This document shows, one piece after another, positions 47,906 through 53,900 of a DNA stretch of 54,594 bases. Both the position numbers and the translations under genes were made by a program. The stretch spans positions 101,052 to 155,645 of the forward strand of contig NIVC01001044.1 in NCBI GenBank assembly GCA_002269645.1. The letters are read 5' to 3'. A model generated the notes under the pieces. The model made no database searches, was not told the DNA's origin, and was given only the letters and a program-made list of their open reading frames with translations. Every line of letters starts with the position of its first letter. Position 1 is the first letter of the stretch. The stretch comes from Macrostomum lignano (Eukaryota).

Positions 47906-50900
47906 ATGGACATTGAGACGACAGTCAGTGAGACTTCTGCTCAGGCTGAGTCGGAGCAGCCCCAAACTAGCGAGGATGGGACTTTTCGGGTAAGCAAAAT
48001 TAACCTAAGCTTCTATTATACCCTACGAGTGGAATGAAACGCATGGAAACTCCGTTTACCGACTCAAAGATTCAACACTTTTGAGAAATCGATTACTTTG
48101 CCTGGGCTAGAACTGCGCCTCTTTTGGGCTGCGGTGCTCAGAAGAGACCAGTTTCAACCGGTTACATTTTGAGTTGCTGCGGGGTACAAATCTGCCAGTT
48201 TGATCTGTCAAGAAACCTGTGTTTGACTCTGGCTTGAACAAGTAGAAAGCTGTTGGGATTATTTTAGAGACTGTAGTACTCTAATATTTAAACTGTTCCG
48301 CTCTCACCTCATGAGGCACTACCTTCGAATTCGCAAGACGTCAAAGCTGCCCGTGCTTGGCGTGAGTCCAACCATATTCTTTGATTGGGTCTGGCCAACG
48401 TATATCATCTATCTACCGAGCAAAAGGTTACCACTATCACTTTGTTGCAATCCCAACATACAACATACGCCACGACAGGAGCCGAGGCAGCGTCTGATCT
48501 CCAACAGTGCGTCTGCCGCGTCGGCACCGGCTGACATGCAGTATCATCAGCATCACCTCCAGCAAATTGGCGAGTTTCGCCTCGATCTGTCCGACGGAGA
48601 CGGGGAAACTGGCTGGGAGAGCTCAGAGAGCTGCAACGTCTCGGTGAGCAAAAGGACTAGTTACTGGTAGGGCAGAACACTGCAAAGTTTGAAGGCTTCA
48701 GAATGCATTAGCAAGATCAGTTTGTTTGTTTGTCTGTTAGGTTTGTTGTTTGTAAGCAGTCATGCCAATTACACTTGAGCCTTGAGCACGTAGGGAACAA
48801 ATTCAGGGGGAAAATTCAGGGAACATGGCCAGGCATGTACAGTCTCTGTGCCTCGGAGTTGTTCCTCATAGTCGAGAATAGCACAAGCCCTAGGGTCCGT
48901 GCTGTGCCGCAAATTAACGTGGCCGAACTCTCAATGTGGAATCGAACCTAGATACGAGCCTCGTACTTGGGAGCGACAGTCAGACGTCTTAGCGTAGGTT
49001 TTAAGGCAATGGATAATTCTGTAGCTGCTTGTCTTTCGCTGGCTGAGGGGTCATTTGTCACCTTGAGCTGCAACAGCTAGACAACAACTTGCAAACAAAT
49101 AACTCCTTTGTTATTTATGCCCATTCCTATCTATCAACATGAAATTTTTCAGGACTGCGACAGGCCACCAGATCCAAGAGACTCCGAATCGGACTTCGAC
49201 GAGATGCCGCCTCGGCTGTCACTGCTCGGCTGGCGATTGCCTCGGTCTTGTAAATGGGAGAGATTTTCATTAACTATCAAGGCTAACCACTTCACCCAAA
49301 AACCCTTGAACGAAAGGCCATAGACATTTCAACATAGCAAATCCTTTCCAGCCTTACAAAGACAAGACTTATGACTGTTCTACGAATATATACAGTGTTA
49401 TTCTAGTTGCTGTTGAACTTAAGCCTCACCCATATTAAGCCTCACCATACCTCGGCTATTGAGGCTTCTAGCAAGTCAAAAAACAGCTCCACTGACCTTT
49501 TTGAGGTTAATTTAACATAGCTCGTACATGTAACAGGTTTCCTAAAATATTACCAATTAAATCAATTAAATCATAAGAGCCTCTTTATCCGGCTCTCGGG
49601 GCCTTCGAAACTTCACAATAGAAATCCAGCCCTCTCAAGTTTTGTCTCTTTTCAGTTCTTTATCTCATCTTATCCTCTTCTCTCTCTTCTCTTCTGCTCT
49701 CTCCTCTCTCCCCTCTCCCCTCTTTCCCCTCTCGTCTCTTCTCTCCTCTCTTCTCCCCCATCTCCCCTCTTCTCTCTCCTCTCTCCCCTCTCTCCCCTCT
49801 CTCACTCCTCTCCTCTCTTCTCTCTTTTATCTTTTCTCTCATCTCATCTCTTGCATCTCCTCTGTTCTCTCGTTTTCTGTTCCCTCTCTTTTCCACTCTT
49901 ATCTGGCCCGCAGCAATGAGCTGAATTCTCTATCTGGCCCTTGATCTTAGGCCAGGCATCTGTCTCTTTTTAGAGCAAATTCTGCTCATTTTCAAGGGCT
50001 ATAGCACCCGTAACCAGAAGATTTTTGGGACAGCCGTTAAACCGTCACGAATGAAACCAACCGAATCCCAAACTCCAAACAGACCTGCTGTGGCTGATAA
50101 ACGCATTTAACGCCTGGCGACTGTGGCTCTTCCTCACCGGATTCAGCATTGTGACCGCACTGTTCAGCAGTGCCGTCATCATCGCCAACAATCTCATCAG
50201 TTTGGGTGCGCGCAACATCATAATATGGTTGCTTGACTACTCTTCGTAGGAAATTCTGCACAACCTTCTACACTTCCTTATTGTTTTTAAAATTTTCAAG
50301 GCCTGCTCAGCGCTCGCTACAATCGAAGCCTGGCCATTGCCGAGACTCGAGACTGGCCAGATTTTGTACTTTTCGTGCTGTGGTGGGTGGCCAGTGTGGT
50401 GCCTTTCATCCTGCTGTCATGCCTGATGGTCCAGCTGTGCAGCCCCATCGCTGCGGGTGAGTCTGGGAATCAGAGAGTCAGAGACTTGGGAGACAGAGAC
50501 TTAGGAGTCAGAGACTTAGGAGTCAGAGACTTGGGAGACAGAGACTTTGGAGTCAGAGACTTAGGAGTCAGAGACTCAGGAGTCAGAGACTTAGGAGTCA
50601 GAGACTTGGGAGTCAGAGACTTGGGAGTCAGAGACTTAGGAGTCAGAGACTTGGGAGTCAGAGACTTAGGAGTCAGAGACTCAGGAGTCAGAGACTTAGG
50701 AGTCAAGAAATCAGGAGCCGGTGACGTAAGAGTAAAATCCAAGAATCGTCCCCATCACTGGCCCAGGCTCCGGGATCCCCGAGCTCCGCTGCTTTCTCTC
50801 GAACGCCTATCGTGAAAAATCGCTGCTCGGAAGCGCCGCCCTGCTCACTCGCGTCATCGGCCTCATCCTGGCGCTGAACTCCGGCCTGCCAGTCGGGATG

Positions 50901-53900
50901 CTGGGCCCCAACGTGCACATGTCTTGCTGCATCGCCCACCTGCTCATGTTTGACCACCGACTGCAACGACAGGTCCAGCCGGACCGAGGGCCGCGGCCGC
51001 CATCGGGCGCTTCGGCCGGTGCCTGCGGGCCGTCCGAGTGCTGGCGTCCGCTGCCTGCAAGACGCTCGAGGTGACGGAGGGGGCGGACGTTGTGTCAGGG
51101 AGGGGCGGATGGTTGTTTTAGGGAGAGGCGGATGTTGCGTCATGTTGAGACGGATAGCTAGGTTTTGGGAGAGGATGATTTTTGTGTGGTAGGCAGATTA
51201 GTGATGCAAACTGAAAATCTCCACGAAACGCCTTCCCGAACCAGCCGTGGACTTGGGAGCACCAGGAGATGATGTGCGTCGCCGCGGCCGTCGGGTAGCT
51301 TGCACTTTCAACGCACCGATCAGCGGCGTTCTGTTCTCAATTGAGCTCACCACCAAGTACTTCGCGGTGAACACCTACTGGCGCGGCTTCTACTGCAACA
51401 TTGTGGCCACCATGGCTATGAGCATTCTCATGACCGGCATTCGGCACAGTGAGGCTGCCTGTCTACCTACCTACCTATCTATATCTATCTATCTATCTAT
51501 CTATCTATCTATCTATCTATCTATCTATCTATCTATCTATCTATCTATCTATCTATCTATCTATCTATCTATCTATCTATCTATCTATCTATCTATCTAT
51601 CTATCTATCTATCTATCTATCTATCTATCTATCTATCTATCTATCTATCTATCTATCTATCTATCTATCTATCTATCTATCTATCTATCTATCTATCCAT
51701 CTATCTATCTATCTATCTATCTATCTATCTATCTATCTATCTATCTATCTATCTATCTATCTATCTATCTATCTATCTATCTATCTATCTATCTATCTAT
51801 CTATCTATCTATCTATCTATCTATCTATCTATCTATCTATCTATCTATCTATCTATCTATCTATCTATCTATCTATCTATCTATCTATCTATCTATCTAT
51901 CTATCTATCTATCTATCTATCTATCTATCTATCTATCTATCTATCTATCTATCTATCTATCTATCTATCTATCTATCTATCTATCTATCTATCTATCTAT
52001 CTATCTATCTATCTATCTATCTATCTATCTATCTATCTATCTATCTATCTATCTATCTATCTATCTATCTATCTATCTATCTATCTATCTATCTATCTAT
52101 CTATCTATCTATCTATCTATCTATCTATCTATCTATCTATCTATCTATCTATCTATCTATCTATCTATCTATCTATCTATCTATCTATCTATCTATCTAT
52201 CTATCTATCTATCTATCTATCTATCTATCTATCTATCTATCTATCTATCTATCTATCTATCTATCTATCTATCTATCTATCTATCTATCTATCTATCTAT
52301 CTATCTATCTATCTATCTATCTATCTATCTATCTATCTATCTATCTATCTATCTATCTATCTATCTATCTATCTATCTATCTATCTATCTATCTATCTAT
52401 CTATCTATCTATCTATCTATCTATCTATCTATCTATCTATCTATCTATCTATCTATCTATCTATCTATCTATCTATCTATCTATCTATCTATCTATCTAT
52501 CTATCTATCTATCTATCTATCTATTCTATCTATCTATCTATCTATCTATCTATCTATCTATCTATCTATTTATCTATCTATCTATCTATCTATCTATCTA
52601 TCTATCTATCTATCTATCTATCTATCTATCTATCTATCTATCTATCTATCTATCTATCTATCTATCTATCTATCTATCTATCTATCTATCTATCTATCTA
52701 TCTATCTATCTATCTATCTATCTATCTATCTATCTATCTATCTATCTATCTATCTATCTATCCAGGCTCAATCGCAGGCGAGTACCTCATCGGCTCCGCC
52801 ATCGCCATGGCCAAGTCGGAGGATCGCAATGTCCAGTCAGCGGACCTGGCTAGTTTCGTAGGTCTCGGGCTCCTCGCCGGACTCGTTTCCGTTGGCTTCC
52901 TGCGGTTCTACAGGCTCTGCCTAAAGCTCGGGTCTCGCCGGCTGGTGACCTGGGTGGAGCGGCGACTGCCCTGCCGACTGAGGCGCTGGGCGGAGTGAGT
53001 CATCAGAAGTTTTTAACGTAGGAGAACAGTGTCTCAAAAAAGTCCAGATAGTATAGGGCTCCATAAGCTAAGTGTCAGGGACTCCATAATCTGGTTGTCA
53101 GATGCTCCATATTCTTGGTGTCAGATGCTTCATACTCTGGGTGTCAGGGGCTCCATACTCTGGGTGTCAGGGACTCCATAATCTGGGTGTCAGGGCTCCA
53201 TAATCTGGGTGTTAGGAACTCCATATTCTTGGTGTCAGATGCTTCATACTCTGGATGTCAGGGTTCCATACTCTGGGTGTCAAGGACTCCATACCCTGGG
53301 TGTCAGGGGCTCCATACTCTGGGTGTCAAGGACTCCATAATCTTGGTGTCAAGGACTCCATAATCTGGGTGTCAGGGACTCCATATTCTTGGTGTCAGGG
53401 ACTCCATACTCTGGGTGTCAGGGACTCCATACTCTGGGTGTCAGGGGCTCCATACTCTGGGTGTCAGGGACTCCATATTCTTGGTGTCAGATGCTTCATA
53501 CTCTGGGTGTCAGGGGCTCCATACTCTGGGTGTCAAGGACTCCATAATCTGGGTGTCAGGACTCCATATTCTTGGTGTCAGGGACTCCATATTCTTGGTG
53601 TCAGGGACTCCATAATCTGCGTGTCAGGGACTCCATAATCTGGGTGTCAGATACTCCATATTCTTGGTGTCAGATGCTTCATACTCTGGGTGTCAAGGAC
53701 TCCATATTCTTGGTGTCAATGACTCCATAATCTAGGTGTCAGGGACTCCATATTCTTGGTGTCTGGGACTCCATACTCTGGGTGTCAGGGACTCTATAAT
53801 CTGGGTGTCAGATACTCCATATTCTTGGTGTCAGATGCCCCATACTCAGGGTGTCAGACGCTCCATACTCTGGGTGTCAGGGACTCCATACTCTGGGTGT

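Follow-up and report, generated by a model that had tools for sequence, protein, structure and literature searches.

The window examined in this work, i.e. the whole stretch of 54,594 nucleotides of Macrostomum lignano DNA (contig NIVC01001044.1, positions 101,052 to 155,645 of the forward strand, assembly GCA_002269645.1), carries close to its 3' end a gene of the CLC family in which the conserved motif G(K/R)EGP, containing the gating glutamate, reads GMLGP. The original prediction, made from the letters of the window, had described this gene as a ClC-2-like, constitutively open chloride channel that lost the gating residue independently of the vertebrate ClC-K proteins.

Organisation of the CLC gene

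A CLC profile of 75 full-length proteins, comprising 74 relatives and human ClC-2, was run on the six-frame translation of the whole window. It gave a sole collinear series of matches, on the + strand and spanning profile positions 73-402: 50088-50198 (profile positions 73-109), 50357-50458 (123-156), 50760-50948 (154-215, E=1.2e-20), 51257-51295 (230-242), 51295-51513 (243-318), 52807-52935 (303-345) and 54090-54224 (361-402). Six collinear exons encoding helices B to K were delimited between 50083 and 54291, with AG/GT at all flanks and with phases that agree everywhere; the codons split across junctions encode Gly in two cases and Ser in one.

The exon of helix B (50083..50205, AG at 50081-82, GT at 50206-07) ends in phase 1 with ..LLWLINAFNAWRLWLFLTGFSIVTALFSSAVIIANNLISL, and that of helix C (50301..50456) reads (G)LLSARYNRSLAIAETRDWPDFVLFVLWWVASVVPFILLSCLMVQLCSPIAA(G), its last Gly codon being split G|GC with the following exon. 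The latter, referred to as exon D (50767..50972, helices D to F), carries GSGIPE and GLPVGMLGP; its acceptor AG lies at 50765-66 and a GT directly follows 50972, so that the predicted boundaries of this exon are correct. The exon of helices G to H (51245..51448, PWTWEHQEMMCVAAAVG / VACTFNAPISGVLFSIELTTKYFAVNTYWRGFYCNIVATMAMSILMTGIRH, profile E=3e-19) contains a 1-nt deletion. The exon of helices I to J (52766..52994, (S)SIAGEYLIGSAIAMAKSEDRNVQSADLASFVGLGLLAGLVSVGFLRFYRLCLKLGSRRLVTWVERRLPCRLRRWA) has a phase that fits the preceding donor at 51448 and ends at the donor GGA|GTGAGT; a second possible donor follows 52944. The exon of helix K (54040..54291, ..DLANYWRP / AFALGYCLFASLFLALLTCPAHRLGRGSLSQVRQFDQLRQLFAHTSW..) begins at a strong acceptor. 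The gene exceeds the 3' end of the window past helix K and the sequence available here is its 5' half. Further 5' exons must exist, since exon 50083-50205 is devoid of an in-frame Met; 5' coding exons were searched for in the window and were not found.

Motif at the gate position

The conceptual translation of 50766-50972, GSGIPELRCFLSNAYREKSLLGSAALLTRVIGLILALNSGLPVGMLGPNVHMSCCIAHLLMFDHRLQRQ, is free of stop codons. At 50895-50909 on the + strand the codons GGG ATG CTG GGC CCC encode G-M-L-G-P in place of G(K/R)EGP, which puts Met at the Lys/Arg position and Leu at the position of the gating Glu and retains the Gly, Gly and Pro of the motif. GLPVGMLGP falls column-for-column on the GKEGP of ClC-1/2, and the comparison of exon D and the next exon with human ClC-2 (E=1e-24) likewise set GMLGP on GKEGP. 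Among 91 sequences aligned with MAFFT, GKEGP is present in 61 and GMLGP in the M. lignano gene alone; the loss of the Lys beside the gating Glu is unique to the flatworm gene among the relatives examined, and a metagenome scan for genes encoding GxPxGMLGPxVH returned 0 matches. Apart from GMLGP the surroundings of the pore show GPNVH for GPFVH, PISG for PIGG and a K>R replacement in helix E.

The G(K/R)EGP typical of the CLC family, with its gating Glu at the N-terminus of helix F, is thus absent. The other family signature, GSGIPE (Ser-cen, N-terminus of helix D), is read at 50766-50783, as predicted, and exon D alone reaches 32.6 bits with Pfam Voltage_CLC (cut-off 24.8). Exchangers carry an internal proton Glu where channels have Val. 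In the exon after exon D, FSIELT at 51334-51351 places Leu (51346-48) at this internal-Glu position, which makes the site non-titratable, as in the FSIEVT type of the channel branch. That the gene is of the channel type, as predicted, is supported by this Leu and by ClC-1 and ClC-2 being the best structure matches.

The change from GAG to CTG takes two substitutions and that from AAG to ATG one, and indel routes cannot yield GMLGP. The only database protein of the same organism that matches the gene, UniRef A0A1I8F5Q8 (P0002), represents another, indel-rich assembly; it is pieced together from 100%-identical blocks, to which each of the three frames of 50303-51067 contributes. Its block SRDAGPQR spans the motif in a shifted frame. 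Enumeration of the underlying codons allowed only M or T at the Lys position and L, P, Q or R at the Glu site, hence Lys and Glu are ruled out in the second assembly too. The codons of both assemblies indicate that Lys and Glu were truly lost by substitution and not through an indel artefact, in line with the original prediction.

Relatives of the gene

The 389-aa model scored 114.4 bits with Pfam PF00654 Voltage_CLC and 228 bits with the custom CLC profile. Among solved structures in the PDB it matched ClC-1 (2e-29), ClC-2 (5e-28), ClC-3 (6e-26) and ClC-K (6e-20). The named top matches in protein searches were ClC-2-like proteins of nematodes, arachnids, annelids, crustaceans and choanoflagellates and vertebrate ClC-K, i.e. 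all of ClC-1/2/K type, which would fit a place of the gene in the channel branch; the ClC-3 structure, however, scores just slightly lower, and the sister in the tree (below) is unstable. Identity to any CLC protein is ~45-50% at most in the core and 30-35% overall. At this level of identity the label ClC-2-like is generous.

A close orthologue, a paralogue or another flatworm CLC was not found in the protein searches, the frame-garbled P0002 excepted. Exact-protein look-ups of P0002, of two open reading frames (ORFs) over exon D, of the receptor ORF described below and of a neighbouring ORF revealed no copy of the locus from another assembly; the look-up of P0001 gave two short unrelated metagenome contigs, which were not used.

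Several of the best 150 matches are devoid of the gating Glu. GKMGP is present in Steinernema, Mesorhabditis, Parastrongyloides, Caenorhabditis angaria, Caenorhabditis sp. 36, Aphelenchoides and the acanthocephalan Pomphorhynchus laevis (KAI0981484.1), GKVGP in Bursaphelenchus, GKAGP in Anisakis and GKQGP in Pristionchus, and Gln variants at the gating Glu occur in other lineages. A conserved clade of nematode proteins and one acanthocephalan protein thus carry Met, Val, Ala or Gln at the gate (the Glu-less set comprises P0008, P0009, P0012, P0013, P0015, P0042, P0056, P0143, P0133, P0044 and P0022). Glu-less CLC channels of invertebrates are thus already present in sequence databases, and ClC-K, the natural exception named in the original prediction, is not the only one; the nematode clade weakens the case for the flatworm gene as the second exception after ClC-K. 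No description of the nematode clade or of other invertebrate Glu-less CLCs was found in the literature searched; literature searches on the quality of the M. lignano assembly or its pseudogenes, and on GKEGP together with CLC, gave nothing useful.

Introns and other features of the window

The three larger introns of the CLC gene consist almost entirely of tandem repeats, all given here for the + strand: ~17 copies of the 15-bp unit GAGTCAGAGACTTAG at 50459..50717, a (TCTA) microsatellite of ~325 copies, 99% perfect, at 51462..52762, and ~39 copies of a 23-bp unit at 53072..53974. Long spurious ORFs arise from these repeats.

The stretch at 50973..51074 (+), directly after the donor of exon D, is GC-rich (76%) and was treated as intron. 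The frame of exon D remains open in it until a TGA at 51072 that overlaps a second GT. Its +2 frame is coding-like, with a GC content at third codon positions (GC3) of 0.88, reads ..RAVRVLASAACKTLE and bears, at ..RFGRCLRAVRVLASAACKTLE, a faint likeness to the linker between helices F and G and the start of helix G of CLC proteins; the M. lignano model P0002 reads through it. The stretch could be an alternative or relic piece of an exon. Added coding sequence or a duplicated start of helix G was considered as well; the CLC profile lends this no support.

An uninterrupted ORF of 1289 aa on the - strand (608-4477) has CCHC zinc-knuckle and YQDD-type polymerase motifs, recognised by eye. It looks like the gag-pol polyprotein of a long terminal repeat retrotransposon and is probably a young insertion. 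An intact single-exon gene of 396 aa at 19045-20235 (+) encodes a rhodopsin-type G protein-coupled receptor (GPCR; 7tm_1, 179 bits), nearest to flatworm NPY/NPF-type receptors (Schmidtea NPYR-8, 52%). Its best M. lignano protein is only a paralogue with uniform 65% identity, so that the public M. lignano proteomes searched do not contain the receptor. Three tandem multi-exon genes of the CAP/GLIPR-like type (cysteine-rich secretory protein family), identified by homology, lie on the - strand at 25827-24716, 30568-29499 and 34110-33299; the middle one has ANFEQLIWK where the conserved GHFTQVVWK was expected. The long ORFs of short peptide repeats at 21199-22723 (-, HGHCHPESWTLS..) and 35687-36592 (+, GNGVCHSGCSLLAMGF..) are tandem DNA repeats open in several frames by chance.

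Proposed function of the gene

On balance the gene is best read as a lineage-specific, fast-evolving Macrostomum member of the CLC channel branch (ClC-0/1/2/K type), whose product, if the gene is intact, would form an ungated protopore. The sequence shows Leu for the gating Glu with which helix F begins and Met for the adjacent Lys, the internal proton-relay position being occupied by Leu, which agrees with a channel; the substitutions were most likely gained while selection maintained the frame, the splice sites and the codon bias.

The side chain of the gating Glu rivals chloride for the outer site and constitutes the protopore gate (PMC5362633). CLCs in which this Glu has been neutralised (EcClC E148A/Q; ClC-5 E211A) conduct chloride passively in an open state and have lost gating, and ClC-K, with Val at this position, is open across a wide voltage range, with a near-linear current-voltage relation and weak voltage dependence (PMC5362633). 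By analogy with these proteins, the product of an intact gene would have no titratable carboxylate for the outer anion site, and each of its protopores would be expected to have neither the fast gate that responds to voltage, chloride and pH nor proton coupling. The channel would then stay open for the most part and conduct anions in a near-ohmic manner, its control being left to the common gate or to partner proteins. The loss of Lys would remove a positive charge and should weaken the attraction of anions at the outer mouth. The equivalent Lys of ClC-0 affects conduction and gating. That CLCs without the gating Glu are viable in nature follows from the existence of ClC-K (Val) and of the conserved nematode GKMGP clade.

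This functional story is plausible and hinges on the frameshift at 51293-98, described below, being an assembly error. The protonephridial or osmoregulatory role suggested in the original prediction is unsupported. The predicted constitutively open channel was right in that the gating Glu is replaced; the assembled copy, however, has a frameshift and a stop codon in the next exon. A less probable reading, put forward tentatively, is that the gene is intact and expressed and would represent a third independent gate-less CLC lineage after ClC-K and the nematode GKMGP proteins and the first in which Glu and Lys have both become hydrophobic.

Integrity of the reading frame

Exon 51245-51448 switches frame at 51293-98, within the interval of the original prediction, which does not mention it. 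GGG TAG is here one G short in a G run: ...QEMMCVAAAVG is read in frame 51242 and is followed by the TAG at 51296-98, and (V)ACTFNAPISGVLFSIELT... resumes in frame 51241 with an overlap of one G. Rescue of the frame by an alternative acceptor was rejected, as no AG in 51243-51298 has the right phase. Splicing at the strong sites GGA|GTGAGT and CTTGCAG| leaves an extra C in CCCC at 54071-74, which shifts the frame. Splicing at 52944|54051 instead avoids the shift and scores equally with the custom CLC profile (226 vs 228 bits), and the second frameshift was therefore lowered to a possible one. The locus thus contains one certain lesion (51293-98) and one possible (54071-74). The -1 shift at the former and the putative +1 shift at the latter cancel, so that a literal reading regains the CLC frame at the exon of helix K, with several stops between the two sites. 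In terms of the lesions expected of an unprocessed pseudogene, the gene shows one definite 1-nt deletion, zero nonsense codons and splice sites that are all intact.

Several observations speak against a working channel gene. Taken literally, the ORF terminates at the TAG at 51296-98, with a product ending after helix F. The segment read covers helices B to K only; helices L to R, with the family's GxFxP motif (helix N) and Tyr-cen (helix R), and the two C-terminal CBS domains would lie beyond it. A further ~6 kb of coding sequence elsewhere in the window (the 3.87-kb retroelement ORF, the 1.19-kb GPCR ORF and the exons of the three CAP genes) is frameshift-free, hence the assembly is not generally indel-ridden. 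Mismatches at conserved columns amount to 19% in the CLC model vs a mean of 5.7% (s.d. 4.9) in the relatives, two other sequences of the alignment set being as divergent, and no branch of the tree is longer than that of the model. Of 3714 matches obtained among 1.84 billion protein representatives, none exceeded 50% identity even in the conserved core, and no transcript-derived protein for the gene was found in the protein searches. Finally, the Leu of GMLGP is bulkier and could narrow the pore.

A rival explanation is a young pseudogene or dying duplicate, in which the frameshift or frameshifts are real and which yields no channel. This explanation comes close to an even chance. The locus would then be a redundant copy (the genome of M. 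lignano is reported as recently duplicated) that either inherited the Glu-less motif from a formerly working ancestor or tolerated it under relaxed constraint. The definite deletion leading to the TAG, the frameshift-free coding sequence elsewhere in the window, the longest branch with its surplus of changes at conserved sites and the failure of the protein searches to find an annotated or transcript-derived protein all favour it; a second indel at 54071-74 would be probable if GGA|GTGAGT and CTTGCAG| were the ancestral sites. Against it, both indels fall in short G or C runs, the usual type of long-read error, the second vanishes with the alternative splice, and the other assembly, as represented by P0002, is indel-filled at the same locus. 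The absence from databases carries no weight, since the intact GPCR of the window is absent too, and the argument that the gene is not annotated and therefore not expressed was dropped for this reason. A comparison of the frameshift rate per homopolymer run in the CLC gene with that in the retroelement and GPCR ORFs was set aside as weak, these ORFs having been chosen for intactness.

The coding sequence itself bears the marks of selection. Its 389-codon conceptual version has zero in-frame stops; in-silico mutation gave a probability of no stop of ~0.05 (<0.054) at 8% neutral divergence and of 0.006 at 15%. GC3 is 0.81, compared with 0.82 in the intact GPCR and 0.74-0.87 in the exons of the CAP genes, the GC content of non-repeat intron being 0.47. 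Of 48 near-invariant columns (>=85% conserved) the conceptual product keeps 39; at the other nine, conservative replacements prevail (K>R twice, E>D, G>S twice, A>V, I>F). The relaxed constraint of an unexpressed pseudogene, named in the original prediction as grounds for discarding it, was not seen in codon bias, stop codons or replacements. With the splice sites and phases intact as well, any neutral phase must have been short, too short for three specific substitutions within six bases, which argues that the motif is not a product of post-mortem decay. It is most likely, judging from the sequence, that GMLGP arose while the gene was under selection. This leaves two readings of about equal probability: the gene is intact and its homopolymer indels are errors of the assembly, or the copy lost its function a very short time ago.

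Origin and consequences of the substitutions

The preferred reading treats the gene as specific to its lineage, and its position was assessed in a neighbour-joining tree computed with the motif columns removed (100 bootstraps). The CLC model was placed, on a very long branch, beside the metazoan/choanoflagellate group of ClC-1/2/K-like proteins. It joined neither the nematode GKMGP clade nor the acanthocephalan P0008, and the nematode GKMGP proteins formed a clade nested within GKEGP nematode channels. P0046, the one GKVGP sequence in the tree, fell in the clade of human ClC-2, away from the model. The gene does not belong to the ClC-K subfamily, which is defined by orthology and Val at the gate: it has Leu, and its ClC-K match is weaker than those to ClC-1/2. 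Nor, with another motif and a position outside the clade, is it a member of the nematode/acanthocephalan GKMGP group. The predicted origin independent of ClC-K is compatible with the tree, in which the placement of the gene is unstable.

The opposite view, that the loss is not independent and goes back to an ancient Glu-less ancestor common to the nematode and acanthocephalan GKMGP channels, is improbable. P0008 combines GKMGP with FNAPIGGVLFSIEL, which resembles the flatworm FNAPISGVLFSIEL, and the unstable sister of the CLC model was wholly Glu-less in 11 of the 100 bootstraps. The tree with the motif columns removed separates the model from these proteins, however, the nested position of the nematode clade among channels with GKEGP speaks against a shared loss, and the residues themselves differ, being M-L in the flatworm and K-M in the nematodes and the acanthocephalan. 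An independent loss of the gating Glu in the flatworm gene is plausible and is the simplest reading of the tree and motifs, not an established one.

It was also considered that a protein is made and conducts in a manner unlike ClC-K, Leu and Met narrowing the pore or removing its charge, so that it would act as a silent or modulatory subunit (e.g. a partner in a heterodimer) or have altered selectivity. The cationic residue and the Glu are both hydrophobic here, the other Glu-less relatives found keep Lys or another polar residue (GKMGP, GKVGP, GKAGP, GKQGP), and the replacements GPNVH, PISG and K>R in helix E lie near pore motifs. Other CLCs with the Glu neutralised nevertheless give open conductances (PMC5362633), and little weight is given to this explanation. 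That GMLGP is a sequencing or assembly artefact is hardly credible: there is at least one frame problem close by in the locus, but an artefact would need three substitutions that leave the frame unchanged, the codons on either side are conserved and keep the frame, and the M. lignano gene model from the other assembly excludes K and E.

The gating Glu is the central mechanistic residue of CLC proteins, and natural proteins without it inform on the function of the pore. What is new here is the GMLGP variant; Glu-less CLC channels as such were already known. If the gene is intact, it would join the nematode GKMGP clade as evidence that animals have lost the gate repeatedly, and such loss would be no peculiarity of the vertebrate kidney. 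Electrophysiology and structural work would also gain a natural Leu/Met variant of the pore, and a flatworm amenable to experiment would offer a candidate for a standing chloride conductance. If it is moreover expressed and of independent origin, animal epithelia dependent on a standing chloride conductance would seem to have lost the protopore gate repeatedly and convergently. If the gene is dead, the pseudogene would be young and ordinary and only its parent gene unusual, and an intact sister copy would become the object of interest. The nematode clade of Glu-less ClC-2-like channels may merit a study of its own.

Comparison with known systems

With ClC-1 and ClC-2, the vertebrate plasma-membrane channels that are its best structure matches, the flatworm gene shares GSGIPE, FSIE(V/L)T, YWRGF and the order of helices B to K. 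They have GKEGP, whereas the flatworm gene has GMLGP, and in the tree the flatworm model does not fall within the bilaterian orthologues of ClC-2. Vertebrate ClC-Ka/Kb (GKVGP), which function in kidney and inner ear and need barttin, resemble it as natural CLCs of the channel branch without the gating Glu, the functional parallel drawn in the original prediction; they carry Val at the gate and keep the Lys, in contrast to the flatworm gene with its Leu and lost Lys.

The Glu-less ClC-2-like channels of nematodes and the acanthocephalan are likewise invertebrate, have a hydrophobic residue at the gate, in some cases together with SIELT, and are among the top matches of the flatworm gene. Unlike it, they have retained the Lys, with Met, Val or Ala in place of the Glu, and the flatworm gene does not fall into the nematode clade. 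The EcClC E148A/Q and ClC-5 E211A mutants share with it the absence of the gating carboxylate. They are engineered single changes in canonical proteins, whereas the flatworm gene is also devoid of the Lys and is highly divergent.

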